A stretch of DNA of 64,000 nucleotides from Carpediemonas membranifera BICM (lineage: Eukaryota; Protista; Fornicata): NCBI GenBank assembly GCA_019828565.1, contig JAHDYR010000019.1:236618-300617 (forward strand), written 5' to 3'. Below the pieces are notes generated by a model, which was given only the letters and a program-made list of their open reading frames with translations, searched no databases and had not been told where the DNA came from. Positions 7,851 through 44,824 of this stretch are shown here, piece after piece. The stretch's first letter is position 1; the number at the start of each line of letters is the position of its first letter. The position numbers and the translations under genes are program-made.

Positions 7851-7927
7851 TGAAGTATCATAGAGTGCACAGTGCAAGCAGTAAAGTAAGACTCTCTGTA
7901 AGGTACGAAGGTCTATAGCAGACTTCA
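7851..7927 (+). mobile_element. Solo copy of LTR-like terminal repeat (TGAAGT...ACTTCA) with 5-bp target-site duplication TTTGG
   Basis: TTTGG|TGAAGTATCATAGAGTGCACAGTGCAAGCAGTAAAGTAAGACTCTC...GTCTATAGCAGACTTCA|TTTGG; same module at 26784-26850, 28117-28164 and 44551-44613. Confidence 0.8.
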
Positions 7928-7959
7928 TTTGGGTAATGTGCAGTTTATGACAAAGCAGC

Positions 7960-25783: not shown

Positions 25784-26012
25784 CTCGCCCTGAGATCGCA
25801 GTTTATCTACCGGCGGGTGTGGTTAGACTCAACAATTCTAATCCTGCGCAGCACAGCGGGTGCTGTGACGATGTGCAGGCAGGGTGATTGATAAATGACC
25901 CCGCTGTGCTTCGGAAGCGTCAGTCAAGTGTTTAAACTGCGAAATAACATGCTCATCCACATGACCCCGCCGTGCCACACACTCGCCCAGAATATTACCT
26001 TCATACAACAAT

Positions 26013-26738: not shown

Positions 26739-26783
26739 GGATTGATTTTCAAGTCGAAGCCGCAAAACTGCGCCTCCGATAGC

Positions 26784-28164
26784 TGAAGTCTGCTATAGAC
26801 GATTGAGAGTCCTACTTTACTGCTTGCACTGTGCACTCTATGATACTTCATTACCCCTTCCCGCTCTCCCTTCCTTCTTCTTGAGAGTGATATTTCGATA
26901 GTCAGTCATCATCGTCGGGGGTCATCAATCAGTGCTTCTCCAGTCCTCTCGCCAAGCAAATAGCTTCCCACCTATCGTCTACCCCATCTTACTTCCATCC
27001 GCTCTCTTCTGCTTGTCGGATTTCGGGGTCTTGATCATGACGTCTTTGCAATCATCACCATGGCCTTCCATCGCACAGCGGGCTCTTCTATGCCGCTGCC
27101 TGAAGATAAAACACTTCAGTTCTTCTAATTCTCGCCATTATCACTGCATAGTCTCGTTCATTAAACGTCTGTCGTCTTTGATGTGTGTTGTTAAGAAGTG
27201 ATCGGTTCATTCACCGCAAAACGCAGAGCTTCACATGACCAGCATCTATACGGTCAAGTTCTCCATATCCTCTCCGCATAACCACGTGATTCCTTTCATC
27301 GGATTGGAGAACAGGCTCTGCTCGTTCACGAAGGCCAAGTACTTTCACACTTGCCTCCTGTCGACCCGGGTGCTCGGGCTCTGCGTGGATTCTTCATCCG
27401 CCACCCAGATGGCACCACCAGCTCCGGTGTGGTCCCGAAGTGTGGGTACACCAAGACCCCCAGCTTCGCGTTCGATATGACTCCTGCGTCATTCAAAAGT
27501 ACAAATCTAGATAGTCTACAAAACTCGGTTAGGTTTGTGCTCCTACACGAGCAGGAAATATTCGACGCTGGGATGGTCAAGAGCTTCCGCAGAGTGCGCC
27601 TGACGAACCACATCTTGCGTCAGAAGCACTTCCACAGAGCTGGGGAGCAGCTTGCTCGCACCCTAGGATGGACTCCTCGGCGACTCCCTCGCGGTATTGC
27701 CCCTCCCCGGGCAGCCCCCACCAGGCTGGTTGTCTTCTACGGAAGCGCTAGATTCAAGACGCCCCGTCGGGTGCATCCATGCGCGCCGTATGGTCGCTTT
27801 GCTATCTTACTACCACACATCATGAGAGCTTTCAACATCACTGCTGAGGCGCACGATGCGATGCCACAACCCGAATTGTCAAGGTGCACCATGGTACAGA
27901 CAGCAACGCCTCAATTCCGATCCTACTACCACCACTTGGCTCAATCTCTCCCATAGAGACAAGACTGCTGCACAGAACATCTTGGATTGCGGCCTCATGA
28001 CGGATGCACAGTATCAAGCCAGTGCTTTCAGAAATCCAGCCCGTCTTCCCAACTATAACCCCAATACACCAATTACGGCTAAACAGCCGCTAGTCTTCGC
28101 CTCCGGGCAAGCTAATTGAAGTGGAGAGACGCAGTGCTTGCACTGTGCACTCTATGATACTTCA
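26784..28164. mobile_element. Fanzor-carrying element, copy A, bounded by direct TG...CA terminal repeats (26784-26850, 28117-28164)
   Basis: Both ends end in TGCTTGCACTGTGCACTCTATGATACTTCA and start TGAAGT; pyrimidine tract 26851-26882 (purine tract on the minus strand) abuts the left repeat; 26805-27354 is near-identical to 44023-44596 reverse-complemented. Confidence 0.8.
27235..28119 (+). pseudogene. Fanzor (TnpB-like RuvC nuclease) pseudogene, internally deleted
   Basis: MTSIYTVKFSISS...; VDPG (RuvC-I); FKSTNL...FRRVRLTNHI..QK; VVFYGSA; CHNPNC; HRDKTAAQNIL (RuvC-III). RuvC-II Glu and first CxxC are deleted, with frameshifts. Confidence 0.85.
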
Positions 28165-28357
28165 AATGCGTGCCGACCGACACCACGCCCAGCCACGCTC
28201 CTCAAAGACGACCCAGTGATCGTAGCCCGTTTATAGCGTGAGTATAGTGATGCTGGCCGTTTTTCACCGGCAACCGGTTCTCTCAGCAGTTGATGAGACC
28301 GATCGGAGAATCATTTATGATGCGGGTGTGGGTGGCGGTCGATTTCCATGACATGGT

Positions 28358-29217
28358 CTACCTCAAGGACGTCTCAACGCTCTGGCACGTCTGCTCCAGC
28401 AGCCTAAGCAGCGTCTCCTCCGTCTGCTGCCGGTCTTCCCTCTCCTGGGCGACGTCCGCAGTCATCCGAGTCGCCACATCCTCCAGCATCTTAAACATGG
28501 TCTGCTCGGTCTCCTCCCGCACCTTCTGCTCGGCCTTCATCGTCTCCTGCAGCAGAACGAGGTCCTCGCTGTATTTTCGGATGGTACGCTGGTACTTCTC
28601 GTCCCTCAGCGCCCGCTCATCCTTCTGGGATGCTGCCAGTCGCGCGGCCCGCTCCCTGATCTCGGCCTGGGTCCTCTCGAAGTCCTCCTCGGTCCCCTTG
28701 TGGCCCTTCGCCACCTCAAGCCGCACCCCGAAGCAGGCCTCGTCAATGGACTTGATCACCTTGGACTCGAGCTCTTTGCGCTGCTGGCGCTCGGCCTGGA
28801 GGTCCATGGCGACGGAGGACTCGACCAGTCGCAGCTCCTTGGTCTGCTGCTCGTCCATCATCTCCCGGTTAACCTGCTGGGAGGCCAGGGTCTCTTGGAG
28901 ACGACCGATGGCGTCGCGGATCTTTGATGCGGGCGAGATCTCGGCGGAGTAGAGGCGGTCGATGCGCTCGTCAAGCTGGCGGATCTTCAGCTCCGATTCA
29001 GCGCGGCGGTGCTGCTTCTCTTCGTCAAGGTTCACCTGGATACCACTGAGCTTCGCAGTCAGCTTAGTAAGGGGAAAATGACAGTACATACGGAGCGCAT
29101 GCGCATTTGGCTTGGAGAAGCGGAGTAATCGCTGGAAACGGGTTGACGCGCCTCGCTAGAATGATCACTATGACTTGTTTTCAAGCTTGAGTAAAAGCTA
29201 TTCGACAAGCTGTCCAT
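28358..29217 (-). CDS. SF-assemblin/beta-giardin-like coiled-coil cytoskeletal protein; intron 29063-29091
   Basis: Spliced N-terminus MDSLSNSFY...SPSQMRMRS|LTAKLSGIQ; periodic E...R.E.E coiled-coil; C-terminal EREDRQQTEETLLRLLEQTC. Confidence 0.6.
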
Positions 29218-29371
29218 GGCTGTGCCGTTTCAAAATGATGGCAAAATTTCGCAGATTAGGCATAAAATGCACCGAGATGTGGCTTCCCATCCCGTCACCC
29301 ACGCCAAGGATCCTCCACCAGCCATGCGTCCCAGTCTTAGCCGCACTTTATGTACATTGCCTTGGCCCAAC

Positions 29372-30718
29372 CTACATCTCTACCTCCACCGGCGCCGTCT
29401 CCTTCGTGTATGCCACGAACCCCTCGTCCCCGCCTCCAATCAGCGCGTCGATGTCCAGCTCGGGCAGCAGCTCTGTGATGACCTTCGCCTCCGTGTCAAC
29501 CCGCGTGGCCTGGGCCTGTGCGATGTGCTCGGGCAGCTCCGGGGGCGGGACGTAGTACTGGATGCGGCCCTTGAGCCAGGCGTCGACGATGTCCCTCGCA
29601 ACACGGTTCATGTCGGGCAGTCCGCCGAGCTTGAACATGCCCTTCCGCTGGGCGATGTACTGGAAGAACACGTGCATCGCCTCGTCCGGCTTGTCTGTAT
29701 ACTGCCCGATCTGGTCGAACACGGTGGGCCCAGCCTCGGCCTCCTCGGGGGCCAGCCGGAGGGCCCGCAGCAGCTGGAGGTGGTTGCACCGCTGGAGGAT
29801 GGTCTGCGCCACGTGGACGGGGTCCTTGATGAGCTCGGGCCGCACACAGTTTCGCAGGATAATGTCGACCTCGGTGTCGGCGTGACTGAAGACGACTCCG
29901 GGCGAGTCGATGACGGTGATGTGCTTGGTGAGGTTGATCCGCTTCAGGTCGGTGGTGAAGCCGGCTGCCCCGCCCACGCCGGTCTTCACCTCGCGGCATA
30001 TGCTGTTGATGAGGGAGCTCTTGCCGACGTTGGGATAGCCGATGACGCCGACGGTGATCTTGACCTTAGTGTTGTCCCCAATGTTCGCCAGCTTGCCCAG
30101 GGTCGCCCTCATCTCCTCCAGGCCGAACGCGGCGTCCTTCACGGTCATCGCCTGGGCGTGGTGCATCTGTTTGATCGACGCATGCTTGCCCTGCACCTGG
30201 CCTGCCTTGAAAAGCATCGTCGGGAACTGCGTCTTGAGGTACCGCACCCAACCCCGCAGCGCCTCGTTGGGGACGAGGTCGATCTTGTTGAGAACGAGGA
30301 TGATGTGCTTCTTGAACCCGAACATGGCCCGTATCCGCTGCTCAATGTCGAAGCACCGGCAGCCCATCGGGTCGCGGGCATCTAGGACCTCTAGGATGAC
30401 ATCGGCCTCCTCTAGCACCCGGTGGAGCTTGTCGTAGTACGCCCCACGGTCGAGAGAACGCTCGTCGCGGGTGTCGTTCAGCGCAGCTTGCTCGCGCTGG
30501 TGCTCACGGCGATCGAATGAGTGCTTGAGCTCAGCTGCGTGACTTGCAAGCTCCGATATGCTCTTCTGCTGCGTCTTGGCGCCGGTAATCGCCCCCTTTG
30601 TCAGTTTCATGCCAAGCTTCTCGAGCTTGGGCACGCCCATGTCCCTTTTGTTCACTTGCTTCCTACCACGCTCTATCCGCTGTTGCTTAGCGCTCCCAGA
30701 CTGCCTCTTCTTCGACAT
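29372..30718 (-). CDS. GNL3: Nucleolar circularly permuted GTPase, Nug1/GNL3 (nucleostemin)-like
   Basis: DVILEVLDARDPMGCR, LVLNKIDLVP, VGVIGYPNVGKSSLINS, VIDSPG, GMFKLGGLPD, GRIQYYVPPP. Confidence 0.88.
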   Translation of the reverse strand: MSKKRQSGSAKQQRIERGRKQVNKRDMGVPKLEKLGMKLTKGAITGAKTQQKSISELASHAAELKHSFDRREHQREQAALNDTRDERSLDRGAYYDKLHRVLEEADVILEVLDARDPMGCRCFDIEQRIRAMFGFKKHIILVLNKIDLVPNEALRGWVRYLKTQFPTMLFKAGQVQGKHASIKQMHHAQAMTVKDAAFGLEEMRATLGKLANIGDNTKVKITVGVIGYPNVGKSSLINSICREVKTGVGGAAGFTTDLKRINLTKHITVIDSPGVVFSHADTEVDIILRNCVRPELIKDPVHVAQTILQRCNHLQLLRALRLAPEEAEAGPTVFDQIGQYTDKPDEAMHVFFQYIAQRKGMFKLGGLPDMNRVARDIVDAWLKGRIQYYVPPPELPEHIAQAQATRVDTEAKVITELLPELDIDALIGGGDEGFVAYTKETAPVEVEM

Positions 30719-30864
30719 TGATGCCGTCGGGGTACTTTGTGAAAGGTGACCGTAACTCATGTAACTCACGTAAATACTTCATGCCCGGTCGTGCTCGCCA
30801 TACTTGTCGTGTATCCAACTCTAGGGCGACAATGGTCCTCCAGGATGCACCGGGTTTGCCGCAA

Positions 30865-31003
30865 GTCGACCCCCAACCGCGAGCTGGACGCAGCCAGACG
30901 GCTCGCTTCTGGAATCGGCAGGGCGCATTACACCCTGCGTATTCTGGTAGCGCGAGGATTCTGCCCCCCCCACTCGCCATCAAGACCAAAGACATCGCGT
31001 CAG
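30865..31003 (+). repeat. Dispersed ~140-nt intergenic repeat, copy c
   Basis: Aligns with 20322-20462 and (inverted) 13265-13391. Confidence 0.75.
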
Positions 31004-31053
31004 CGATCCCCTGGCAGTTATAAATATAAATATAAATACACATTTATGTGCCC

Positions 31054-33447
31054 CTACGGCTTGTAGATGTACAGCTCCTGGTCGTCCGCCGACCGCTCCA
31101 GGTACTCGTGCTCGATGAGGTGTTCGATGCGCTGCTTCATGTCCCGGGGCTGCGGGTTGAAGAAGCGCTTCACTTCGTCGCTGATCTTGAGCAGCAGGTC
31201 GTGGTGCCTCATCTGGCGGTGTCCCTTCATGATGCGGACGATCGCACTGTCGATGCTCAGCTCCCGCTCCAGCCCGGTAGCCTCGACGGCGTCTCTCTCC
31301 GCCTGGCGTGTGATCTTGATCGGCTGGACCCCGATCTGGACCTTCACGCTCGTGCTCTTGAACTTGGTGTTGACAGACAGCAACGCGTCACACCGCTTGC
31401 TCAGGTCGATGATGTCGTCATCCGTCACGGGGCTGGTGATCTTCAGCAGCGTCGACAGCCGGAACACCTTCTTGCCAGTGCGGTCCTTGACCTTCTTCGG
31501 CGTGAACAGCTGGAAGAGGTGGGCGGCGATGACCTCCCGCGGGATGCTCGACACGAGGCCGATCACAGAGGACACGGGCACGGGGCCGGGGGCCTCGAGG
31601 ACGTGCATGAACACCGCGTACTGCAGGGGCGTCATGGACACGCTGTACACCCGCTTGGACTCGGCGTCGGGCTCGGGCTCGAACTGGATGTGGACGGCGC
31701 CCTTGTCGGGCAGGAAACGCACCTCAACCTTGTCGTTCTTCGCCGTCTCCTGGGCGACGAGGTGGTCAGCGCAGCCCTGCAGCGCCGCGGGGTAGGGGAA
31801 GCTCTTGGCCGGCTCGATCGCCCAGTGCTGCTGCTGTATGAGCAGGGGGGTGAACTCAACGCCGTCTACGGCCGTCGTGGTGCGGCGGGTCGAGTGCTTG
31901 CTGATGTCCGCGATCATCTGGCGCATGTCGTGGATCCGCTCCATGTCGAAGTACTTGTCCTGCTCCCCTATAGCCTTGAGCATGGCGTTCTCCACCTCCA
32001 GATTGCCCCCGTCGAGAAGACGGTCGGCTAGATTCCTCTTGTGGTTCACTATGAACTGGTCGCGGTCATGGATGGCGATCAGCGCGTCGACAACGTGCTC
32101 GGCGACCTTCTCGATCTCAACGACGTCCTTTGTTGTTAGCAAGTTTACGTATTTCGCCAAGTACAACGGAAGAATGAAGTCACCGTCCTCGTTTGTGAAG
32201 AAGTGCCTCGGGTCTGCCTTGACGAACACGGAGAGGGCGTCGTGGAACACAGCCCGGTCGAGCCCGCCCTTGATGATCTGGTTGAACGGGGGCAGCACCA
32301 CAGTCACGAGGCCCCGGCAGAACTCCTTGAGGGCGCGCTCCCGGTCGGGCTTGTCGACCGCGATGAACTTGGCGATGTACTTCTCGGCGAGCTCCTCGAC
32401 GGACTTCTTGAAGCTTGCGACGACAGAGGCCTGGATCTCCCCCAGGATGCTGGTGCGGCCGACAATGACGTCGGGGTTGGTCTCGCTGGCTTCACGGGCA
32501 ATGCGGTCCGCCGTGACAGCGAGGTTAGTGATCTTGGCGACCGTCGTGACGGCCGTAGCGTCCTTGAGCACGACGGACAGCACGCTGCGGAGAGAGCGGT
32601 CGCCCGACTCGAGCAGGAAGTCCGTATGGGCGTCGACCAGGCCGGACATGCAGGAGAAGAGCATCTCCGCCTCGAGTGACTCGAAGACCTTGGACTCGTG
32701 CGACAGCAGGCGTCTCTCGGCCGCCACCCGGTCGAACACGGTCTCGACGTAGTCGGGCACGGTCAGCTTCTCTCGCAGCTCCTTGCCGGTGCGGATCCAG
32801 AAGCCCTTGGCCTCCTCCATGAGCGGGACGCCGAACAGCTTGATGAACTGCGTGTTGTCCGCCGTCTTGGTCATCTGGCCGGACACCTCGCGGGGCCGGG
32901 GGGCGGCGGGCTTCTCGGACAGCAGCCGCTTGTACGCCTTGAACGCGTTGATGATCTTTTGGACGTCGACGTCGGCGTCACCGGACCTGAGCCGTGTGAC
33001 CTCCTGCTGGATGAACTTGATGACGTCGTCCTGGTACTTAACATGCACCGTCTGGTACAGCGCGCTCATGGTCTCGACGCTGTCGTCCGCGCTGCTCTTG
33101 TTCTTGGAGTAGGAGTTGTATGCACTGCCGATGACGTAGTTGAACATGACGTCGAGGCACTCCTGGAACGATCCCGCCTCCTGGACAACCGTGTACAGCC
33201 CATCGACGAGCTCGTAGCCCGATCTCTCCCGCATATGGTAGTTGTCGAGCATCACGTAGTACTTCTTCAGCTGGGCGAGGAACCAGCGCTGAGCCTTGTC
33301 AGACTCGCTTCCTCGGTTGCGGACAACGACGTAGATCTTCTTGTTGAGCTCAACAAGGTCGTTGGAGTGATCCCGATAGCCAGACTCGTTACGAAGCAGG
33401 TATTGTTGGAAGAACTTGTCCATGGCATCCTGTACGATGGGATCCAT
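31054..33447 (-). CDS. Cullin (divergent), full length
   Basis: DRDQF...HKRNLADRLL, E..ML..I; C-terminal neddylation domain IDSAIVRIMKG...MKQRIEHLIEHEYLER...YIY. Start taken as MDPIVQ. Confidence 0.9.
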   Translation of the reverse strand: MDPIVQDAMDKFFQQYLLRNESGYRDHSNDLVELNKKIYVVVRNRGSESDKAQRWFLAQLKKYYVMLDNYHMRERSGYELVDGLYTVVQEAGSFQECLDVMFNYVIGSAYNSYSKNKSSADDSVETMSALYQTVHVKYQDDVIKFIQQEVTRLRSGDADVDVQKIINAFKAYKRLLSEKPAAPRPREVSGQMTKTADNTQFIKLFGVPLMEEAKGFWIRTGKELREKLTVPDYVETVFDRVAAERRLLSHESKVFESLEAEMLFSCMSGLVDAHTDFLLESGDRSLRSVLSVVLKDATAVTTVAKITNLAVTADRIAREASETNPDVIVGRTSILGEIQASVVASFKKSVEELAEKYIAKFIAVDKPDRERALKEFCRGLVTVVLPPFNQIIKGGLDRAVFHDALSVFVKADPRHFFTNEDGDFILPLYLAKYVNLLTTKDVVEIEKVAEHVVDALIAIHDRDQFIVNHKRNLADRLLDGGNLEVENAMLKAIGEQDKYFDMERIHDMRQMIADISKHSTRRTTTAVDGVEFTPLLIQQQHWAIEPAKSFPYPAALQGCADHLVAQETAKNDKVEVRFLPDKGAVHIQFEPEPDAESKRVYSVSMTPLQYAVFMHVLEAPGPVPVSSVIGLVSSIPREVIAAHLFQLFTPKKVKDRTGKKVFRLSTLLKITSPVTDDDIIDLSKRCDALLSVNTKFKSTSVKVQIGVQPIKITRQAERDAVEATGLERELSIDSAIVRIMKGHRQMRHHDLLLKISDEVKRFFNPQPRDMKQRIEHLIEHEYLERSADDQELYIYKP

Positions 33448-33682
33448 CGTGTTTGCCGCTTCATCTTCTTCGCGAAGGCCCGCAAGAACTGAACTAGTCT
33501 CGTGTGTGCGGTTGGATTGCTCCTCACGGCGTGGGATCATGCAGTGCAATGGGTTTCGATTTTGCCGACACCAAACATGTGCGGCATGTATACCATAAAT
33601 CCGGTGGTTGTACGGAGACAGAGCGAGAGCGCTGGGGCCTGGTCAGCGTGGCCGACTTTCACCACTTGAACGCCAAGGTCAC

Positions 33683-33908
33683 GATGCCTCTTGTGAATCA
33701 AATCGAATCCACAGGACCACCCTGGACTCAGCGATAGCTGGCTCAAATGATCGAGGGTGTCCTTGTTTACGTTACCTGGGTCTGACCGAGGAGTGTCGTC
33801 GGATAGGCCGACGTGAAACGAAGCTGCCGAGATGCATGCCAACCCGCCGATTCACTCGGGGTTGTCGGCCGTCTTCTTAGACAGCAGCCGCTTGTACGCG
33901 CTGATCTT
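33683..33908 (-). pseudogene. Collapsed relic of an older cullin copy (also at 36585-36810)
   Basis: Collinear patches match cullin CDS: 33683~32031 (15/18), 33759~32125/32143, 33775~32206, 33861~32854 (14/15), 33880~32918 (20/20). Confidence 0.7.
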
Positions 33909-33987
33909 CATTTTATCGTTTTCTCATTTTTGATATGCTAGCCAACCCAGTCGACCGACACACCACAAACACGAGAATCAACACAGT

Positions 33988-34925
33988 TTAGTCAAGAAGT
34001 ACCGACCAGGGGTGAGCCTCCTTGCCGTACTGGATGCTGAGCATCTTGTGGTAAACGGCGTTGGTCAGGTCGCCGGCGACACCGTCCTTGCCCGCGGGGA
34101 TGGCGTAGTCGACGTCCTCGAACTGTATGCCGTTCACGGGGGTTACGATGGCGGCGGTGCCGCAGCCGAAAGCCTCGATCATGCGACCATCCTTGACGGT
34201 GTCGCAGACCTCCTGGATGGTGTAGTGGCGCTCCTCGACGGTGATGCCCATCTTCTTGATCTCGGGGTCCTCGCGGACAAGCTCAAGGATGGAGCGGCGG
34301 GTGATGCCGGGCAGGATGGTGCCGTCGAGAGGGGCAGTGACGAGCGTGGGCTTGCCAGTCTTCTTGTCCTTCCACAGGAAGAACTGGTTCATGGCGCCGA
34401 CCTCGGTGCAGAAGAGGTCGCCATTGCATTGCGTTCCGGGTGTGAGCCAGAGAACCTGGGAGCAGCCACGGGAGGCGGCTTGTTGTTGTGCCAGGATCCC
34501 CGGTCCGTAGTTTCCACCCACTTTGGTGTTTCCCGTGCCGCCGGGGAAGGCACGAACGTATTCCTTGGTAGCCCACAGCTTGATGGGCTTGAAACCGTCC
34601 TTGTAGTAAGGGCCGACGGGAGAGGCGATTACGAAGAGCTTGACGCGAGCGGCGGGAGCGATGCCAAGGATGGGGTGAGTGGCGATCACCGTAGGGCGGA
34701 GGTAGAGGGAGTAGCCCTCCTTGTTGGGGATCCAGCCCTTGTCGAGGCGAACGAGCTCCTCGAGGCACTTCTCAACCTCCTTGGCGTTGAACTTGGGCAT
34801 GCAGAGGCGAGCGCAAGAGTCGTTGAGGCGGTTGAAGTTGTCCATGGGACGGAACAGACGAGCCTTGCCCTCGCCGTCGATGTAGGCCTTCATGCCCTCA
34901 AAGCACTCAAGGCCGTAGTGGAGAG
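33988..34925 (-). pseudogene. 5'-truncated copy of branched-chain aminotransferase (ORF from MKAY at 34893)
   Basis: Encodes the same residues as 85-385 of BCAT at 36890-38047; lacks the N-terminal 84 aa. Confidence 0.85.
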
Positions 34926-36349
34926 TCGGCTAGATTCCTCTTGTGGTTCACTATGAACTGGTCGCGGTCATGGATGGCGATCAGCGCGTCGACAACGTGC
35001 TCGGCGACCTTCTCGATCTCAACGACGTCCTTTGTTGTTAGCAAGTTTACGTATTTCGCCAAGTACAACGGAAGAATGAAGTCACCGTCCTCGTTTGTGA
35101 AGAAGTGCCTCGGGTCTGCCTTGACGAACACGGAGAGGGCGTCGTGGAACACAGCCCGGTCGAGCCCGCCCTTGATGATCTGGTTGAACGGGGGCAGCAC
35201 CACAGTCACGAGGCCCCGGCAGAACTCCTTGAGGGCGCGCTCCCGGTCGGGCTTGTCGACCGCGATGAACTTGGCGATGTACTTCTCGGCGAGCTCCTCG
35301 ACGGACTTCTTGAAGCTTGCGACGACAGAGGCCTGGATCTCCCCCAGGATGCTGGTGCGGCCGACAATGACGTCGGGGTTGGTCTCGCTGGCTTCACGGG
35401 CAATGCGGTCCGCCGTGACAGCGAGGTTAGTGATCTTGGCGACCGTCGTGACGGCCGTAGCGTCCTTGAGCACGACGGACAGCACGCTGCGGAGAGAGCG
35501 GTCGCCCGACTCGAGCAGGAAGTCCGTATGGGCGTCGACCAGGCCGGACATGCAGGAGAAGAGCATCTCCGCCTCGAGTGACTCGAAGACCTTGGACTCG
35601 TGCGACAGCAGGCGTCTCTCGGCCGCCACCCGGTCGAACACGGTCTCGACGTAGTCGGGCACGGTCAGCTTCTCTCGCAGCTCCTTGCCGGTGCGGATCC
35701 AGAAGCCCTTGGCCTCCTCCATGAGCGGGACGCCGAACAGCTTGATGAACTGCGTGTTGTCCGCCGTCTTGGTCATCTGGCCGGACACCTCGCGGGGCCG
35801 GGGGGCGGCGGGCTTCTCGGACAGCAGCCGCTTGTACGCCTTGAACGCGTTGATGATCTTTTGGACGTCGACGTCGGCGTCACCGGACCTGAGCCGTGTG
35901 ACCTCCTGCTGGATGAACTTGATGACGTCGTCCTGGTACTTAACATGCACCGTCTGGTACAGCGCGCTCATGGTCTCGACGCTGTCGTCCGCGCTGCTCT
36001 TGTTCTTGGAGTAGGAGTTGTATGCACTGCCGATGACGTAGTTGAACATGACGTCGAGGCACTCCTGGAACGATCCCGCCTCCTGGACAACCGTGTACAG
36101 CCCATCGACGAGCTCGTAGCCCGATCTCTCCCGCATATGGTAGTTGTCGAGCATCACGTAGTACTTCTTCAGCTGGGCGAGGAACCAGCGCTGAGCCTTG
36201 TCAGACTCGCTTCCTCGGTTGCGGACAACGACGTAGATCTTCTTGTTGAGCTCAACAAGGTCGTTGGAGTGATCCCGATAGCCAGACTCGTTACGAAGCA
36301 GGTATTGTTGGAAGAACTTGTCCATGGCATCCTGTACGATGGGATCCAT
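34907..36349 (-). CDS. C-terminally truncated cullin copy (ends NLAD-SPLRP*)
   Basis: Same upstream region and N-terminal ~475 codons as the full cullin; cut at the duplication junction, losing the RING-binding and neddylation domains. Confidence 0.75.
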   Translation of the reverse strand: MDPIVQDAMDKFFQQYLLRNESGYRDHSNDLVELNKKIYVVVRNRGSESDKAQRWFLAQLKKYYVMLDNYHMRERSGYELVDGLYTVVQEAGSFQECLDVMFNYVIGSAYNSYSKNKSSADDSVETMSALYQTVHVKYQDDVIKFIQQEVTRLRSGDADVDVQKIINAFKAYKRLLSEKPAAPRPREVSGQMTKTADNTQFIKLFGVPLMEEAKGFWIRTGKELREKLTVPDYVETVFDRVAAERRLLSHESKVFESLEAEMLFSCMSGLVDAHTDFLLESGDRSLRSVLSVVLKDATAVTTVAKITNLAVTADRIAREASETNPDVIVGRTSILGEIQASVVASFKKSVEELAEKYIAKFIAVDKPDRERALKEFCRGLVTVVLPPFNQIIKGGLDRAVFHDALSVFVKADPRHFFTNEDGDFILPLYLAKYVNLLTTKDVVEIEKVAEHVVDALIAIHDRDQFIVNHKRNLADSPLRP

Positions 36350-36889
36350 CGTGTTTGCCGCTTCATCTTCTTCGCGAAGGCCCGCAAGAACTGAACTAGT
36401 CTCGTGTGTGCGGTTGGATTGCTCCTCACGGCGTGGGATCATGCAGTGCAATGGGTTTCGATTTTGCCGACACCAAACATGTGCGGCATGTATACCATAA
36501 ATCCGGTGGTTGTACGGAGACAGAGCGAGAGCGCTGGGGCCTGGTCAGCGTGGCCGACTTTCACCACTTGAACGCCAAGGTCACGATGCCTCTTGTGAAT
36601 CAAATCGAATCCACAGGACCACCCTGGACTCAGCGATAGCTGGCTCAAATGATCGAGGGTGTCCTTGTTTACGTTACCTGGGTCTGACCGAGGAGTGTCG
36701 TCGGATAGGCCGACGTGAAACGAAGCTGCCGAGATGCATGCCAACCCGCCGATTCACTCGGGGTTGTCGGCCGTCTTCTTAGACAGCAGCCGCTTGTACG
36801 CGCTGATCTTCATTTTATCGTTTTCTCATTTTTGATATGCTAGCCAACCCAGTCGACCGACACACCACAAACACGAGAATCAACACAGT

Positions 36890-38047
36890 TTAGTCAAGAA
36901 GTACCGACCAGGGGTGAGCCTCCTTGCCGTACTGGATGCTGAGCATCTTGTGGTAAACGGCGTTGGTCAGGTCGCCGGCGACACCGTCCTTGCCCGCGGG
37001 GATGGCGTAGTCGACGTCCTCGAACTGTATGCCGTTCACGGGGGTTACGATGGCGGCGGTGCCGCAGCCGAAAGCCTCGATCATGCGACCATCCTTGACG
37101 GTGTCGCAGACCTCCTGGATGGTGTAGTGGCGCTCCTCGACGGTGATGCCCATCTTCTTGATCTCGGGGTCCTCGCGGACAAGCTCAAGGATGGAGCGGC
37201 GGGTGATGCCGGGCAGGATGGTGCCGTCGAGAGGGGCAGTGACGAGCGTGGGCTTGCCAGTCTTCTTGTCCTTCCACAGGAAGAACTGGTTCATGGCGCC
37301 GACCTCGGTGCAGAAGAGGTCGCCATTGCATTGCGTTCCGGGTGTGAGCCAGAGAACCTGGGAGCAGCCACGGGAGGCGGCTTGTTGTTGTGCCAGGATC
37401 CCCGGTCCGTAGTTTCCACCCACTTTGGTGTTTCCCGTGCCGCCGGGGAAGGCACGAACGTATTCCTTGGTAGCCCACAGCTTGATGGGCTTGAAACCGT
37501 CCTTGTAGTAAGGGCCGACGGGAGAGGCGATTACGAAGAGCTTGACGCGAGCGGCGGGAGCGATGCCAAGGATGGGGTGAGTGGCGATCACCGTAGGGCG
37601 GAGGTAGAGGGAGTAGCCCTCCTTGTTGGGGATCCAGCCCTTGTCGAGGCGAACGAGCTCCTCGAGGCACTTCTCAACCTCCTTGGCGTTGAACTTGGGC
37701 ATGCAGAGGCGAGCGCAAGAGTCGTTGAGGCGGTTGAAGTTGTCCATGGGACGGAACAGACGGGCCTTGCCCTCGCCGTCGATGTAGGCCTTCATGCCCT
37801 CAAAGCACTCAAGGCCGTAGTGGAGAGCGCTGCTAGCGGGATGGAGCTCAAGGTTGCCGAAGGGAACGATGTGGGGATCGTGCCAGCCATCCTTGGCGTC
37901 CCAGTCAATCTCCAGCATGTGATCGCTGAAGGTAGTGCCAAAGGTGAGGTTCTCGGGAGCAAGCTTCTCCTTAGGAGTGTGAGTGAGCTGAACCTTAAGG
38001 TTGGCAGCGTTAACGTCAGAGTACAAGCGGTGGAAAGCGGTGAGCAT
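36890..38047 (-). CDS. BCAT: Branched-chain amino acid aminotransferase, possible organellar presequence
   Basis: FGTTFSDHML, LHYGLECFEGMKAY, LFRP..N..R, SLYLRP, KVGGNYG, EVGAMN, ILPGITRRS, EAFGCGTAA. Confidence 0.95.
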   Translation of the reverse strand: MLTAFHRLYSDVNAANLKVQLTHTPKEKLAPENLTFGTTFSDHMLEIDWDAKDGWHDPHIVPFGNLELHPASSALHYGLECFEGMKAYIDGEGKARLFRPMDNFNRLNDSCARLCMPKFNAKEVEKCLEELVRLDKGWIPNKEGYSLYLRPTVIATHPILGIAPAARVKLFVIASPVGPYYKDGFKPIKLWATKEYVRAFPGGTGNTKVGGNYGPGILAQQQAASRGCSQVLWLTPGTQCNGDLFCTEVGAMNQFFLWKDKKTGKPTLVTAPLDGTILPGITRRSILELVREDPEIKKMGITVEERHYTIQEVCDTVKDGRMIEAFGCGTAAIVTPVNGIQFEDVDYAIPAGKDGVAGDLTNAVYHKMLSIQYGKEAHPWSVLLD

Positions 38048-38606
38048 CAGGTTGGTTGGATTAAAGACCTGACAAGACTTGACTTTTCCACACCATATCT
38101 TATACGGAAGATCCGGGTGGTTAAGGGTCGCCCTGGAGTGTCATATGCGCTGAACCGGCTTGACTGGTGTTAATTCGGCCCTATACAAAAGTCAATGCCT
38201 GGAAATCGACTGTGCAACCAAGATGACCTCACGAGACTGCGGATTCGCGACCATAGCGGCTGCTGAATTTCGATCCCGTAGGAACACGTACCGCATTGTC
38301 CGACGAAGCATGCATGGCGATCCTGCGATCAGATTCTAACTGTGATTCGACCGATTTTTTTGTCACGACTTGATATCACCGGGGTGACACACGCTTTCGC
38401 GCCATCATTCCCTGCCCAGGCGTGTATAGGATGATCCCACTAAACTGCCGAGGGACAGTCATGTACGTCCTGCTGGACGACCGGACGGCTTCCAGGACCT
38501 CGCTGAAGCATGCTTGGCTCACAACCATCGATGATCCCCGGAGAAGCATTTACTCAGCAAATCACCCAACCATGTTTGCCCGGCCGTCGCATCACACCGC
38601 GCACCC

Positions 38607-39827
38607 CTATCCTTTCTTCGACTTCTGCGTCATCTCCAGAATGACCATCTCTAGCCGCTTGACCTCAAGCTGCGCCAGCCGGAGCTCACGCTGCATATTC
38701 CCCAGAAGCCCATTCTTCCGCGTGAGATCTTCACTCATTAGTGACAAAGCTGCACTCTGCTCCGAGATACGGCGGTCACGGCTCGAGATCTCGTCCCGCA
38801 GTGAGTTCATCACATTCATCTCCCGGCTGTACTGTTGCACCCAACCGTGTTTCCACTGCTCAATCATCGAGTTGATATGGGATACGGGGATCGGATCTGG
38901 CCTGTGGGTATCAGTTGAGATCATCAAACTCGAATCAGCCCAAGTTGGCATGAAAGTGTATCTTGCAGTCAAGATGGGATCCTCAATAAACCCGTTCCGA
39001 CTGAAGAACGGCACTGCGTCGATTCCTGCGAACACGATGAGCGTATCTCCACTCGTCTGGTCGATCAAATCCTTCAGAGTCACGACGAGTCGTCTCCCGA
39101 GCCCAAGTTGCTGGAATCTGGTACGCACACCGAGCAACGACAGCTGGTAGAGCTTTTCCTTAGGCACCAGGGTGTTTGGGACCAGCTCGAAAGAGATGGC
39201 AGCGACCAATCTATCCTTGAATTTGATTGGATCCTCCAGGTCGACCGGGCCCTGGATGTCCGACGGGAGGACCTCCCCGAAGTCCGACCTGGGGCCGGTG
39301 AACGAGGAGGTGGACTCACTCGACTCTTCCGAGTCTGTGTCCTCCTCTTCAGGGTCAGATTCAGTGGGGGTCTTCTCTGCACGGCGACGGGAGCGAAGGC
39401 GGTCTAGCTTGACATCCTCCACACTGCGGAGGACCGCGAAGGTGAGGTAGTACTCGTTTGAGAGGTATTCCCGCAGTGCTTTGTGGCCCATGTCGGGCAG
39501 GATGTGACGGTAGAGCGAGACAAGAGCCTCTTTCATCTCCAAATCATACTGAGTGGGCGTGTTGTGAGTTTGAAGTAGGTGCGTTGAAAGATGGATGTAG
39601 GCGTTCTCAAAGGGAAGAGTTAAGATGGATCCTGTGAGAAGCGTGTCAGGGCGGTGCTTCGTAGCATCCCGATCATGCCCTTGCTGCGGTTTTGTGTCTC
39701 TAAGCGTTAAACTGTAGAGAACGTCGTCCATTGAGGGAAAAGAAGCAAATAGGCGAACACTGGGAAGTGGCTTTGTATATATCGCATACTCACTGCCAAC
39801 GACCCAACCAGGCAGTGCTGAGGCCAT
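38607..39827 (-). CDS. GNAT acetyltransferase-domain protein with C-terminal coiled coil
   Basis: LGVRTRFQQLGLGRRLV (acetyl-CoA motif A), AVPFFSRNGF; start uncertain. Confidence 0.65.
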   Translation of the reverse strand: MASALPGWVVGSEYAIYTKPLPSVRLFASFPSMDDVLYSLTLRDTKPQQGHDRDATKHRPDTLLTGSILTLPFENAYIHLSTHLLQTHNTPTQYDLEMKEALVSLYRHILPDMGHKALREYLSNEYYLTFAVLRSVEDVKLDRLRSRRRAEKTPTESDPEEEDTDSEESSESTSSFTGPRSDFGEVLPSDIQGPVDLEDPIKFKDRLVAAISFELVPNTLVPKEKLYQLSLLGVRTRFQQLGLGRRLVVTLKDLIDQTSGDTLIVFAGIDAVPFFSRNGFIEDPILTARYTFMPTWADSSLMISTDTHRPDPIPVSHINSMIEQWKHGWVQQYSREMNVMNSLRDEISSRDRRISEQSAALSLMSEDLTRKNGLLGNMQRELRLAQLEVKRLEMVILEMTQKSKKG

Positions 39828-39931
39828 GCGCGGCCCCGGAGGAGGACTTCTGTCTCTCAAATGATAGCTGTCCCGCGTACTTTATTTACAGCATTCACGC
39901 GGCCCTTCATCCAGACATATCAAGCACCACC

Positions 39932-41416
39932 CTACTCAATAATGCCCCCGTTCTGGCACTCCGTGTAAGGCCCAGTCCACTTGCCCAGCGGTAACCACAG
40001 CAAACCAGAGGGGAACGAGAAGATACTGAGCATTGTCGCCAAGTTTGCCCAAAAGACGATGTGCCTGCGGAGGCTGTAGTCGCTCTTCTTGGGGAGTTTC
40101 GCGATCTGACACAATCTGGTTCGCTGAATGAGTATCTCAAGCGCCCATATAAATGCCACAAACACAGATCCAGGGGGGAAAACCCCGATCAACTGGACCA
40201 TCAGGAAATATTTGAAGCAAATCTCAAGATACGTAGATGCGGCCTCATATCGAATCTTATAAAATTTCTTCATCGCCCATGGTATTGCGATGAACGTCAG
40301 GGTATAGCCCAAGCTGTGGAACAGCAGTAGCAGCATCAGGAAGTATGTCATCGCCTCCATCGAGCAGCCCGGCGCCACAACTGCTAGGATGGTCAGGCTG
40401 ACCCAAGTGAGGGTGAATTTGAACAGCAGCACCCTGATATTGCGGACCATGCGCTTGGCCGCCCGAGTCCGGTGCATTTCGAATCGTGCGAGAACAAAAG
40501 AGAGCGGTGAAGCCGCCTGGAACCCTACAACATCTATTGCAGCGACGAGGGCGACTGATCCGACAGTCTGCCAGACGTAGCCATTCATGGGAACGTCCGG
40601 GTCAAACCGGGGCCTGGCTGGGGGAAGAACAACCAGGCTGAGAAGGACGGCAACGGCGAAGGGGGCGACTAGTCCGATTATAAAGACAGTGGTGGTCACT
40701 GTGATGAGGGCAGCATGCAGTGCAGAGGGCATCTTGGCCTTGAGCTCGTTATTAGTGGAGTCCAACAGGAAGGCGTGGGATAGCGGCAGGTGGGGGTCCC
40801 TCTTACGGCGGACAAGGTAGGTGTAGGCCGTCCAGAGAGAGAACAGGGCGGGTTGGACTGCGATGAGGAGGGCAACGAGGGCGAGCATGCAGACCCACGG
40901 CCACCAGATGCCAGGGGAGACGAATCGGGCGGCGTTTAAGCCGTTGATGACTGCAAATGGAGTCATCCACCAATCCTCGGCCTTGTAGCTGAAGTAGCTG
41001 GAGAAAAGCTGCGGGGCTGCGGGCAGTACACCGAGAACGCCTATGACTACGGACCAGAGAAGGAGATAGTCGAGGTAGTCGAACACCAGGCGGGTACGCA
41101 GACCCACACGCCGCTCGATGGAGGCCAGCTTGGAGAAGAACATCAGCTTCACGGACCGGAGCTGGTTGATGGGGTCGCGGTCGTGGACGGTGGGGTCGAC
41201 GAAGACCGGGCGGGAAAGGATGGAGACGCCTGTGAAGTGCCCGAGGAACCAATCGAACACGAGAAGTACCTTGGAGTGCTCGATCTCCTCCTCTTCCTCT
41301 TCTTCCTGGAAGGAACGGAGCTCATGGAAAGATTGGGAGAACGCCTGGAAATGAGCGTCTTGCATCACGAAATTCAGGGGATTAACAGATCCACGCCATC
41401 GAATTCCGCTTGACAT
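39932..41416 (-). CDS. Multi-pass membrane protein, TMC (transmembrane channel-like) family-like
   Basis: LASIERRVG...FDYLDYLL, LARFEMHRT...IRVLLFK, YEAASTYLEI...FPP resemble TMC segments; many hydrophobic helices. Confidence 0.55.
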   Translation of the reverse strand: MSSGIRWRGSVNPLNFVMQDAHFQAFSQSFHELRSFQEEEEEEEIEHSKVLLVFDWFLGHFTGVSILSRPVFVDPTVHDRDPINQLRSVKLMFFSKLASIERRVGLRTRLVFDYLDYLLLWSVVIGVLGVLPAAPQLFSSYFSYKAEDWWMTPFAVINGLNAARFVSPGIWWPWVCMLALVALLIAVQPALFSLWTAYTYLVRRKRDPHLPLSHAFLLDSTNNELKAKMPSALHAALITVTTTVFIIGLVAPFAVAVLLSLVVLPPARPRFDPDVPMNGYVWQTVGSVALVAAIDVVGFQAASPLSFVLARFEMHRTRAAKRMVRNIRVLLFKFTLTWVSLTILAVVAPGCSMEAMTYFLMLLLLFHSLGYTLTFIAIPWAMKKFYKIRYEAASTYLEICFKYFLMVQLIGVFPPGSVFVAFIWALEILIQRTRLCQIAKLPKKSDYSLRRHIVFWANLATMLSIFSFPSGLLWLPLGKWTGPYTECQNGGIIE

Positions 41417-41569
41417 TTGTGAATATAAGTTGGGGTTGGTGGTTTGCCACTCACGGCAACGTCGTAGGCTAAAAATGCACAGGGAAATATCTCTGGCATG
41501 GGCTGTCATCAGCCGCCAGGACAGCCCCCAGTGCCCGCCCCGTGTCCCCCATCCAGTATCGCGAGACAT

Positions 41570-42703
41570 TTACATGAGCTGCCTCTTCGCCATGTCCAAC
41601 ACCCGCCTCTCGCACTCCACAATGGCCGCCCCCCGGCCCCGCGGGCTCCCCAGCTGCCCCAGCCTCAGCTCCAGCAGCTTGCCGCACGCCTCCCTGATTC
41701 TAGGCTCCTCCGGCGGCCAGTCCGGCGATATTTCGTCCATGCCGAGGGCACTGCCGAGCAGCACGAGGATCTCCTCTGCATAAATAGCATCTGCTGCGGG
41801 ATCGTAGTGGATGGGCAGGTCGATATCGCCCAGGTCGACCCCGTCGGTCAACTCCAGGTACTCCTCGAGGAACTCGGGGTCCGCGTCGGCCACCTGAGGG
41901 CAGGCCTCGGCGAGCTGATCGCCAGTCACCCTCACAATATCGAACGGGTTCGTCTCCTTCTCCACGAAACCGTATTTCATCAAAAGATTTGCGGTGTCGA
42001 GGTCGCCGTACGTGTTCCACAGCTCCTGGCCCGCCCCGATGTCCGCACAGGCGACGACGTCGAATCCATCCCCAGCCTGAGTCACACTGACCGTGTTTCC
42101 CGCAGTTTTGTGGTTGAACGTGTCTCCGAACGGCGCAAGGACGGTGCCCCAAGACTCGTGGGTGAACGAGTAGCTCATGATGATGTAGCAAGCGTGCTGG
42201 AACATGGGCAGCGTCACGGGCTTGGGGAAGAAGTCCGTGTGAGAGGCGGTGAAGGGCTGGACGACAGTCGCGTACGTCGCTGCAATGCGCTGCTGGTTGT
42301 CTCTGATGTCGCCGAGCAGGTCGGTGCCGCTGAGCGTCTCCAGCTCGTCCTCGGTCCAGTGGAAGGGGAGCCACTTGGTTGTGGGGGCGGGCAGTGTGGC
42401 GAGGTACGGCTTCCACGCGGAGTCCGGCTGGAAGTAGAGCTCCCGGATGAAGGATAGGGCGAGGGGAACCCAGTCGCCGCTGTCCTCGGTAACAAGCGTC
42501 TCTATGTGCTCCTCAATGATGCTCCTGAGATCGCTGTTTTGGTAACAAAGGATGGCATCCGCTGGGATCCGTCCTACGGTGGTGTCCTTCGAGATTGACT
42601 TCTTGGAGATGACACCAAGGCCGGAAACTGTCCTAGTGGATACTTCTATCTCAGGAATGAGGTTGAAGCTCCTCTCTTGCATCCAATCGACGTAATCGTC
42701 CAT
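41570..42703 (-). CDS. SET-domain protein lysine methyltransferase (SETD6/Rubisco-LSMT-like)
   Basis: GLGVI, SAWKPYLATLP, LPFHW...EL..L.GT, IMSYSF, PFGDTFNH, GQELWNTYG, LLMKYGF. Confidence 0.88.
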   Translation of the reverse strand: MDDYVDWMQERSFNLIPEIEVSTRTVSGLGVISKKSISKDTTVGRIPADAILCYQNSDLRSIIEEHIETLVTEDSGDWVPLALSFIRELYFQPDSAWKPYLATLPAPTTKWLPFHWTEDELETLSGTDLLGDIRDNQQRIAATYATVVQPFTASHTDFFPKPVTLPMFQHACYIIMSYSFTHESWGTVLAPFGDTFNHKTAGNTVSVTQAGDGFDVVACADIGAGQELWNTYGDLDTANLLMKYGFVEKETNPFDIVRVTGDQLAEACPQVADADPEFLEEYLELTDGVDLGDIDLPIHYDPAADAIYAEEILVLLGSALGMDEISPDWPPEEPRIREACGKLLELRLGQLGSPRGRGAAIVECERRVLDMAKRQLM

Positions 42704-42822
42704 GTTTGTGATTGGCCTCCTGATGTGCTGCGCAGGATTAGAATTGTTGAGTCCAAAACACACAGTGATCCAAGCAGCATCAGGATCGCAGTGTGGTTCA
42801 TCATACTCTATCAATCGTGCGC

Positions 42823-44613
42823 TGCATATCACGCGCGCTGCAGCGCGTGTTTGCTCAACTTAGCAAGTTAATGATAGCGAGGAAGAGCACCTCTCTGGGA
42901 GTCGTAGTGGAAAGGAGATTGCTATATCTGATCTGAAGTTGCATCGAAGGTGCACCAAAGGATGTTCTCGCTGGCGCTCTTATCTCGGTGAGAGAGATTG
43001 AGAAGTATGTCTCTCTGCTCGGGATGCCGACGTAGCCGTTCAACGCGCCATGGAGCTCCCTCGCACGCGGGATTCTGGCAGAGCATGGTGCGGTGTGTGT
43101 GCACCACGCGTCTGAAGTGTGCTTTGCAGTATGGGCACACGATGGAAGTGCGGAATTCCGAGACCATCGTGACACTCACGACGACGTTGTGCCGGAGCAT
43201 GATGCCAGGGAGAGCTCGAGCAAAGTGGCGGTACGGAGCACAGGAGGGAGTGCCGGCGGAACAAAACAGTGCAGCCCCATACGCGACTTCGAGGTGAATG
43301 GGCTCCGGGGGGCGCCGAGATCATCCAGGAGTTGACGTCCAGCCCGGGCGAAGTGCTTCAGGCGCAGACGGTGATTGACAAAAGTCGCACGGCGGAAACA
43401 CTTTCTCGTCCCCTCGTTGAAGATCTGAACGATGTTCTCATGGACAAACCTAATCGACTGTTTGAGAGCCTCTAGACTTGTCGTTTTGAACGATGCTGCG
43501 CTCATATTCACGCGGAAAGAGGGGGTGGCAGTGTAGCCACACTTAGCGAGTACGCCAGATACACTCTGCCTGTCTGGGCGGCAGATCGTGTAGCCGCCCA
43601 GCGACCGAGCACCAGGGTCGAAGCCCATGAGGTGGGCATCGGGGTCTGGCGCGGGGCGAGCATCTGCGTCATCCACACCCAGACGCTCCCGAGCCTTTCG
43701 CTTCATCGTCGGGTTGCCACTGGCACGTCTGCTGACGTATGACAGAGCACCAACTTGGACCGTGAGGTCCACGGCGACCCCATCTGTCTTGACAGACAGC
43801 ACCCGACGGATGTTCGGAGGAAGAGCCTCCAGCTGCTCTCGCGTCATGCGCTCAGTGGCGTGATGCTCCGGGTCGACCCCAAGTTGGGCAAGCCAAGCCG
43901 GGTTCAGCACGTTGAGAGAACACGGAACGTGCATGAACCCGGGGCGGACCGGAGCCATCGGGACAAGCGGAACAAGCTTGGGGGCCCGCCAGCGGCTTGT
44001 CACCCGGAAGAGGTGGATGGGCGCAAGTGTGAAAGTACTTGGCCTTCGTGAACGAGCAGAGCCTGTTCTCCAATCCGGCGTAGAAGTCCGCGATGAAAGG
44101 AATCACGTTTCTACGGTTATGGAGAATGGAGGATATGGAGAACTTGACCGTATAGATGCTGGTCATGTGAAGCTCTGCGTTTTGCGGTGAATGAACCGAT
44201 CACTTGTTAACAACACACATCAAAGACGACAGACGTTTAATGAACGAGACTATGCAGTGATAATGGCGAGAATTAGAAGAACTGAAGTGTTTTATCTTCA
44301 GGCAGCGGCATAGAAGAGCCCGCTGTGCGATGGAAGGCCATGGTGATGATTGCAAAGACGTCATGATCAAGACCCCGAAATCCGACAAGCAGAAGAGAGC
44401 GGATGGAAGTAAGATGGGGTAGACGATAGGTGGGAAGCTATTTGCTTGGCGAGAGGACTGGAGAAGCACTGATTGATGACCCCCGACGATGATGACTGAC
44501 TATCGAAATATCACTCTCAAGAAGAAGGAAGGGAGAGCGGGAAGGGGTAATGAAGTATCATAGAGTGCACAGTGCAAGCAGTAAAGCAGGACTCTCGTTG
44601 TATCGAGACCTCA
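42823..44613. mobile_element. Fanzor-carrying element, copy B (inverted relative to A); terminal repeat 44551-44613 preceded by purine tract 44520-44547
   Basis: GAAGAAGGAAGGGAGAGCGGGAAGGGGTAA|TGAAGTATCATAGAGTGCACAGTGCAAGCAGTAAAG...CCTCA; other end is a divergent hairpin (42823-42857), boundary tentative. Confidence 0.72.
42922..44166 (-). pseudogene. Fanzor1-like RuvC nuclease, frameshifted and internally deleted but with D-E-D triad and Zn finger
   Basis: MTSIYTVKFSISSIL; LVPLVP; VKTDGVAVDL; MGFDPG (D); FKTTS...FRRATF; EVAYGAA; VSEFRTSIVCPYC (E); CQNPAC; HRDKSASENIL (D). Frame changes near 44020 and at G6 run 43307-43312. Confidence 0.9.
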
Positions 44614-44824
44614 CCTCCTTCCTGTGCACTTTAAGGGCCGGAGGTTGTAGCGTTCTCCTGCGCGGCACAGAGGTCGCCAAGGGTTGCCCGCGATGCGCTG
44701 TGCGTTATTCCGCCTCTTTTATCGTTTTCAGAGACATCGCCAGATTTCTGCTGGAAACTCCTTCATCAGATAATCGTTGATAGTAGGCCATGCCTTTATG
44801 GTAATATAGTCAGATATGCGCAGC

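Follow-up and report, generated by a model that had tools for sequence, protein, structure and literature searches.

How does a Fanzor gene come to lie inside an element that looks like a miniature long terminal repeat (LTR) retrotransposon, antisense to that element's retroelement-type signals? Fanzors are eukaryotic relatives of TnpB and Cas12 and are thought to restore excising transposons. The question is raised by two elements, copy A and copy B, in a 64,000-nt stretch of the Carpediemonas membranifera BICM genome (hereafter the window, C19:236618-300617; the assembly comprises 24.2 Mb in 69 contigs, and C-numbers denote contigs, L-numbers the genomic loci that we compared). Both elements carry pseudogene copies of a very divergent, Carpediemonas-specific Fanzor/TnpB-like gene. 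We show that the shell which carries the gene stems from the miniature LTRs of resident Ty3/gypsy-like retroelements, and that the two terminal units of this shell are not regenerated from one another. The two copies are built as follows, M type being the name given to the second repeat family of copy B, which is unrelated to the T type:

26784-28164, plus strand: copy A, whole element
26784-26850, plus strand: copy A left terminal repeat, T type, 67 nt, TGAAGT...ACTTCA; left flank ATAGC at 26779-26783
26854-26882, plus strand: pyrimidine run of 29 nt (a purine tract on the other strand), 3 nt past the copy A left repeat
27235-28119, plus strand: copy A Fanzor pseudogene, in three open reading frame (ORF) pieces
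28117-28164, plus strand: copy A right terminal repeat, T type, 48 nt, TGAAGT...ACTTCA; right flank AATGC
42721-44613, minus strand: copy B, whole element
44551-44613, minus strand: copy B left terminal repeat, T type, TGAGGT variant, 63 nt; duplication GGAGG at 44614-44618
42922-44166, minus strand: copy B Fanzor pseudogene, in three frames
42721-42764, minus strand: copy B right terminal repeat, M type, 44 nt, TGTG...CACA plus TCA; duplication GGAGG at 42716-42720
26805-27272 and 44129-44596: stretch of 468 nt, 100% identical between copies A and B, inverted

The two repeats of copy A have their final 30 nt in common and are unlike in their first parts, and the TGA stop codon of its Fanzor is formed by the first 3 nt of the right repeat. 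An earlier note, made from the letters of the window, had described these direct repeats with their flanks, as well as a purine tract 3 nt before the repeat on the strand opposite Fanzor in both copies. Both descriptions were borne out, and the 29-nt pyrimidine run after the left repeat of copy B is identical to that of copy A. Copy B proved longer than the note had it, extending to 42721 and ending in an unrelated M repeat; in an alignment with 29 other genomic copies, homology reaches 42724. The 5-bp duplication around copy B is perfect, which rules out a 15-kb inversion between the two copies as the source of the unlike flanks of copy A. The copy B Fanzor is of T type in its 5' half and of M type from approximately 43631 downward, where it is 94-98% identical to 40 or more genomic copies. 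Over the 468 nt that are identical in copies A and B, other family members diverge by 1.5-2.5%, suggesting recent gene conversion or a very recent common source; despite this identity, the first approximately 20 nt of the two left units represent different variants. Both copies also keep an 89-aa ORF in the 5' leader, between the left unit and the Fanzor start (26932-27201 and 44200-44469); it has no family match in Pfam and may be a chance ORF or a small upstream one. At the other end of copy B, one public-run contig tracks the host gene (42400-42726) as far as 42726 and then carries 21 letters unlike the window, which could reflect another allele, another insertion at the site or a repeat-induced contig break.

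All of the motifs on which the earlier note had based its Fanzor assignment are present: the ORF pieces in the window carry DPG, HRD and the zinc-finger cysteines (CxxC...CxxxC), and copy B also carries EFRTS. The EFRTS block is missing from copy A because of two internal deletions (approximately 440 and 78 nt) relative to the fuller copy L060. Intact genes, for which the note had recommended a search, were found outside the window as a 642-aa ORF at L007 (1521-3446, minus strand) and a 508-aa ORF on C37 (L002). In the L007 ORF and in copy B, the RuvC residues D, E, and D follow one another in this order, and a zinc ribbon separates the E from the final D (FDPGARS, SEFRTS followed by CPYC...CQNPAC, and HRD). 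Placement with Fanzor and TnpB nonetheless comes from ESM Atlas features and predicted-structure matches, not from sequence profiles. The exact L007 protein is present in the Atlas, where residues 375-642 have a language-model feature score of 0.96, and 19 of the 30 nearest clusters carry PF07282, with giant viruses, Mucoromycota and arthropods as sources. The Atlas model of residues 375-635 has template modelling (TM) scores of 0.55-0.66 to clusters annotated as Cas12f1-like TNB, DUF8286, and IS605 OrfB.

Several results count against this assignment. In Pfam, the best match for the window ORFs is PF07282 (Cas12f1-like_TNB) with an expect value (E) of 0.017-0.047, below the cut-off, and the intact 642-aa ORF matches nothing in Pfam or the PDB. 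A ten-member profile searched against the PDB at E up to 10 gave Parasitella Fanzor1 as the sole match, aligned at the EFRTS/zinc-ribbon block; with E 1.2, it is below significance. An AlphaFold model built from a 10-row alignment was too poor to use (mean predicted local distance difference test score 39.9). Weighing both sides, we consider it very probable that the family has the TnpB/Fanzor fold in its C-terminal approximately 260 residues, with a predicted nuclease activity. The family is also narrow: an exhaustive search of 1.84 billion representatives returned 31 proteins, 28 of them at E <= 1e-10 and all from Carpediemonas, and a profile search of 5.8 billion proteins likewise returned Carpediemonas proteins only, with no Fanzor or TnpB from other species. 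Four public runs contain it in contigs of unlabelled kind, which attest to its presence and carry no transcript ends. Across 29 M copies, substitutions shared by at least two copies (N80/S53) gave a ratio of nonsynonymous to synonymous rates (dN/dS) of 0.50 (p = 1e-4 versus neutrality), while singletons (dN/dS 0.79) do not differ from neutral. The shared substitutions point to purifying selection, and hence to a nuclease that mattered in the lineages that propagated.

To place the two copies in their family, we searched the genome with the 30-nt cores of the T and M repeats, using reversed patterns as controls. The T core occurs at 118 places and the M core at 187, compared to 0 for the reversed controls. 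The elements are 1.4-2.4 kb long, present in high copy number and non-autonomous, with Fanzor as sole gene between terminal direct repeats of 39-77 nt (TG...CA); at least 40 genomic copies are 94-98% identical. Among the first 100 places listed per core, for which pairing was tallied, there are 13 same-strand T pairs and 14 M pairs 0.9-2.4 kb apart, the rest being unpaired. Reading the T-unit anatomy in 30 genomic loci gave 19 solos and 9 left units, and the pyrimidine run follows the left repeat in 9 of 9 full elements. A perfect 5-bp duplication flanks 13 of the 19 solos, and 4 more match at 4 of 5 positions. Full elements likewise have perfect duplications, namely GAATG for a short complete T element, GTAAG for the C37 copy and GACAA for an M element. 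The tally that the note had proposed thus shows mostly solo units, consistent 5-bp duplications and tract adjacency. Direct-repeat ends that lack a target duplication, by which an IS607/Crypton-type recombinase would be recognised, were not what we found. The window itself holds two solos, the first of which the note had reported with its 5-bp duplication:

7851-7927, minus strand: solo T-type repeat, 77 nt, a unique longer variant; duplication TTTGG; host motif 10 nt away at 7938-7949
25818-25855, plus strand: solo M-type repeat, 38 nt; duplication GCGGG at 25813-25817 and 25856-25860; host motif 10-11 nt away at 25797-25806

Since each unit is bounded by a 6-bp inverted repeat (TGAAGT/ACTTCA) and occurs alone with 5-bp duplications, the elements could be taken for DNA transposons, made of two units resembling miniature inverted-repeat transposable elements and moved by a DDE transposase. 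Fanzor would then restore excised copies, as has reportedly been proposed for IS605. Unlike ends would survive such transposition, and a review expects Fanzor to play a part only where the element excises (PMC13565253). However, no transposase is associated with the family, and the M ends have just 4 inverted letters in common. The purine tract (in both the T and M families), the AGTAAA signal and, in the M family, a fragment of a retroelement ORF all lie on one strand, that opposite Fanzor, and the oligo-A junctions and varying lengths of the end pieces are signs of reverse transcription. We therefore regard a DNA transposon as quite improbable.

In every element examined, the left and right units differ in their first part. 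The M core exists in two variants (v1 and v2), which differ at three clustered positions and are mixed within elements. Copy B and the C37 508-aa copy are T/M chimeras, whose left unit is of T type and whose right unit is of M type; at 98% identity to each other, they occupy different sites, each with its own perfect duplication (GGAGG versus GTAAG). Chimeras with their own duplications are not products of normal LTR replication, as strong-stop transfers would make the ends alike. In the closest sibling pair, L006 and L014, which have diverged by 0.57% over 1,918 nt, the end pieces measure approximately 210 and 15 nt. Given these unlike sibling end pieces, the chimeras and the mixed core variants, either each event supplies a new outer end or the cargo travels between existing units. 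The note had proposed a miniature LTR-type element with an antisense Fanzor, and its TG...CA repeats, 5-bp duplications, solos and purine tract all stand. These are also what would be expected of a canonical terminal-repeat retrotransposon in miniature (TRIM) that regenerates both LTRs in each cycle, but this is the part that fails: unequal units, mixed cores, chimeras and the want of a tRNA primer site make TRIM-like replication hardly credible here.

What the outer end consists of is clearest in the M family, where the outer part of the left unit is a 3' piece, variable in length, of a retroelement ORF region on the opposite strand, for example:

L003:463-864, minus strand: retroelement ORF fragment

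The fragment forms a truncation ladder over 109 places, with starts at residue 1 to 114 and all pieces reaching the C-terminus. It is joined to the 30-nt M core at a fixed junction through 3-5 A, and the M core always caps it. The longest open frames have 392 aa (C1:1440943), and distant relatives of 1391-1505 aa are located at C10:333797, C26:444525, and C3:179090. The fragment shows a PD-(D/E)xK-like spacing (ADLFVLD-x9-VIDVTV); with no Pfam match, a single 95-aa homologue and no likeness to the C-termini of two Ty3 pol proteins, it is unclassified, and its Atlas score of only 0.86 gives a weak lead to zf-RVT clusters.

A 5'-truncation ladder with a fixed oligo-A junction is suggestive of a non-LTR reverse transcriptase of the long interspersed element (LINE) type, which would begin at the target nick, copying a helper RNA from its 3' end, and then jump to the 3' end of a Fanzor-antisense RNA. 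The endonuclease-like spacing and the zf-RVT lead would fit such an enzyme, unlike ends would be preserved and the chimeras would be explained. On the other hand, both ends are precise, the duplication is constant at 5 bp and the termini are TG...CA, all of which is typical of an integrase and not of target-primed reverse transcription. The seven terminal letters of the M elements also end a Ty3 LTR (see below), and the T family has no ladder; its 31-nt longer tail, which we dismissed as a helper mark, is unique to the solo at 7851-7927. Moreover, the ORF fragment lacks a Pfam match, and a full-length helper was not retrieved. On this evidence a LINE-type origin is improbable, and we place it behind the homing scheme considered next.

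The other way to obtain unlike ends, cargo that moves between existing units, would be met by homing. In this scheme, a retroelement system spreads the short units, and a guide RNA read from the right unit leads the nuclease to cut solo or left units, after which repair templated by a Fanzor-bearing element copies the gene in. The left unit of every full element is indeed of solo type, so that the different first part of the right unit would belong to the cargo, and full elements and solos are alike in their duplications and target geometry. Near-identical cargos occur behind different outer end pieces (L006/L014; copy A/copy B), and both T/M chimeras carry 2-3 T-unit letters (TCA, CA) after the M unit and before the duplication. 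In both families, the 30-nt core follows TTTA in left and solo units and GCAG or TTTG in right units, which is how a target-adjacent motif (TAM) combined with self-protection would be expected to look; the TAM of a known Fanzor or TnpB corresponds to the beginning of its own element. That the nuclease is under purifying selection in lineages that propagate would also make sense. Nevertheless, the guide RNA is hypothetical, the 3' region having no significant fold (z-scores -0.6 and -1.1), and the homology arms would be merely 20-45 nt. The TTTA could just as well be the complement of a polyadenylation-type TAAA signal, and unit-unit recombination of full elements would yield such solos too. 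On balance we hold homing to be unlikely, and its specific form, in which Fanzor spreads by RNA-guided homing into dispersed solo mini-LTRs with a 30-nt target behind TTTA in left and solo units, to be more doubtful again.

Where the elements insert leads back to the resident retroelements. Both copies lie close to a conserved intergenic host motif of 10-12 nt with the consensus [CT][AT]TAAA[CG]TGC[AG]C, i.e., TAAACTGC[AG]C:

26762-26773, plus strand: host motif GCAAAACTGCGC, exactly 10 nt before copy A
44624-44634: host motif TTAAAGTGCAC, 10 nt from the copy B left repeat

At every T site (more than 20), the motif ends 10 nt before the unit, and in 4 M elements its reverse complement is located 10 nt before the left end. 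The window contains 18 matches versus 5.2 expected, a 3.4-fold enrichment. Integrase-bearing elements number in the hundreds in this genome (716 candidates), and one Ty3 family among them has a 50-nt LTR (TG...CA), present as the 5' LTR before gag at L039 (minus, 2639-2688) and as the 3' LTR after pol and a purine tract at L044 (minus, 1398-1447). LTRs of approximately 50 nt are among the shortest known. The last seven letters of this LTR, TGCCACA, recur at the outer end of the M elements, and at L044 the LTR sits 12 nt upstream of a host motif. With a 50-nt-LTR Ty3 element placed near the motif in this way, miniature LTRs and motif-proximal insertion are therefore native to the Ty3 elements of this genome.

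The motif has further associations. Sites in the window at 7938-7949, 25797-25806, 25932-25941, 26762-26773 and 44624-44634 lie in both orientations between genes, and at least three families of mobile elements use the motif as a landmark. Its presence inside a Ty3 mini-LTR, 54 nt ahead of the gag start, suggests a promoter role; the motif may act either as a promoter or as a 3'-end signal. At L039 (minus, 2583-2688), two different mini-LTRs lie back to back between the pol of one element and the gag of the next. A third Fanzor family, with approximately 50% protein identity and EDRTT instead of EFRTS, has a right end (set by three copies) that finishes ...ACTGCGCAACA and contains the motif-like TATACTGCGC. 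Its four loci are:

L010 3100-3842, minus strand: third Fanzor family
L043 2330-3045, minus strand: third Fanzor family
L053 2090-2754, minus strand: third Fanzor family
L069 56-1338, minus strand: third Fanzor family

The reading that we favour for the copying of the shells is mobilisation in trans. The retroviral-type integrase of a resident mini-LTR Ty3 element would perform the insertion near the motif, and the inserted copy would be made from an RNA transcribed antisense to Fanzor. At each event, the outer portion of one end would be drawn anew, most simply by template switching of the reverse transcriptase from a helper RNA, and Fanzor would be retained because it helps propagation (shared-substitution dN/dS of approximately 0.5). 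In our judgement, this account is evenly poised between right and wrong; homing and the LINE-type scheme, while less probable, would explain the unlike ends equally well.

A number of observations tell against trans-mobilisation by a Ty3 element. The T and M elements lie on opposite sides of the host motif. No core pairs 4-7 kb apart, and no autonomous element sharing the T or M core, were found among the core places listed; the note had suggested looking for such reverse transcriptase/integrase elements, and what is shared with the 50-nt-LTR Ty3 family is the end letters and the geometry. The link to its integrase would accordingly stand on those letters and on insertion geometry at two loci. 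A chromovirus family, whose 129-nt LTR follows a purine tract, was ruled out as autonomous partner as it lacks the motif target. Reading of copies A and B revealed no tRNA-type primer site (TGG-type) next to the units, as the note had already remarked, and the RNA intermediate is one that we infer.

The setting of the elements is a gene-dense, intron-poor region in which the minus strand carries most genes. Between copies A and B lies a tandem duplication of 2,903 nt with 99.97% identity (32023-34925 and 34925-37827), which takes in the 3' portion of a gene for a branched-chain aminotransferase and the 5' portion of one for a cullin. The surplus, truncated ORFs that it leaves are at 33988-34893 and 34907-36451, and the duplication either arose recently or is an artefact of assembly. 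The region 49700-64000 is a very long plus-strand ORF region of 66% G+C with dozens of diverged cysteine-rich repeats (CPAGYYC-type) and three near-identical 1047-nt units at 49873-52266, and looks like a giant surface protein of the variant-specific kind found in other metamonads.

With dozens of copies at 94-98% identity, at least one intact 642-aa ORF and purifying selection on shared substitutions, the family looks active, so that both the benefit of a Fanzor to a non-excising element and its spread by homing into repeats are testable here. It represents a very divergent Fanzor lineage from a compact genome with a candidate TTTA-adjacent target, and thus a potential editor. Homing, if true, would make it a natural eukaryotic obligate mobile element-guided activity (OMEGA) nuclease that uses the scars of another mobile element as landing pads.

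Among known systems, the position-specific LTR retrotransposons of compact genomes are close, and Ty3 itself integrates a set number of nucleotides away from a DNA motif connected with transcription and duplicates 5 bp of its target. The present elements share both properties, but the T and M families use opposite sides of the motif. They resemble TRIMs and large retrotransposon derivatives in that short direct repeats (TG...CA) form their ends, insertions are flanked by 5-bp duplications, a purine tract and solo copies are present, and gag-pol is missing. Unlike TRIMs, whose LTRs are typically far longer, they have units of 39-77 nt; the two units of one element differ from each other and may even belong to unrelated types. 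A tRNA primer site is missing, and the cargo is a nuclease gene. The M left ends recall the U6/L1 chimeric retrocopies that template switching produces, in which the full copy of one RNA is fused, always at the same 3' end, to the 3' piece of a retroelement whose 5' truncation varies; here, however, ends and duplications are integrase-like and the retroelement piece has no poly-A tail. As for the cargo, Bao and Jurka (2013; PMC3627910) described Fanzor1 in DNA transposons (Helitron, Mariner, Sola, and IS607-type). As in Fanzor1 elements, for which the Parasitella and Spizellomyces proteins provide structures, we find a single TnpB-like ORF with RuvC D-E-D and a zinc ribbon after an EFRTS-type block, and many non-autonomous copies that keep the ORF intact. 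In contrast to Fanzor1, our family gave no significant hit to a Fanzor or TnpB of any other species in sequence-profile searches, and in contrast to the carriers of Bao and Jurka, its shell is LTR-derived with direct repeats and holds the gene antisense to retro-type signals. The HERMES survey (bioRxiv 10.1101/2023.06.13.544871) found Gypsy to be the commonest neighbour within 10 kb of Fanzors; that is a count of proximity, whereas here Fanzor lies inside element boundaries defined by duplications. A 2026 review (PMC13565253) saw no reason for a retrotransposon to keep a Fanzor and knew of none that does; the LTR-like carrier described here is of a kind not yet documented in the literature.

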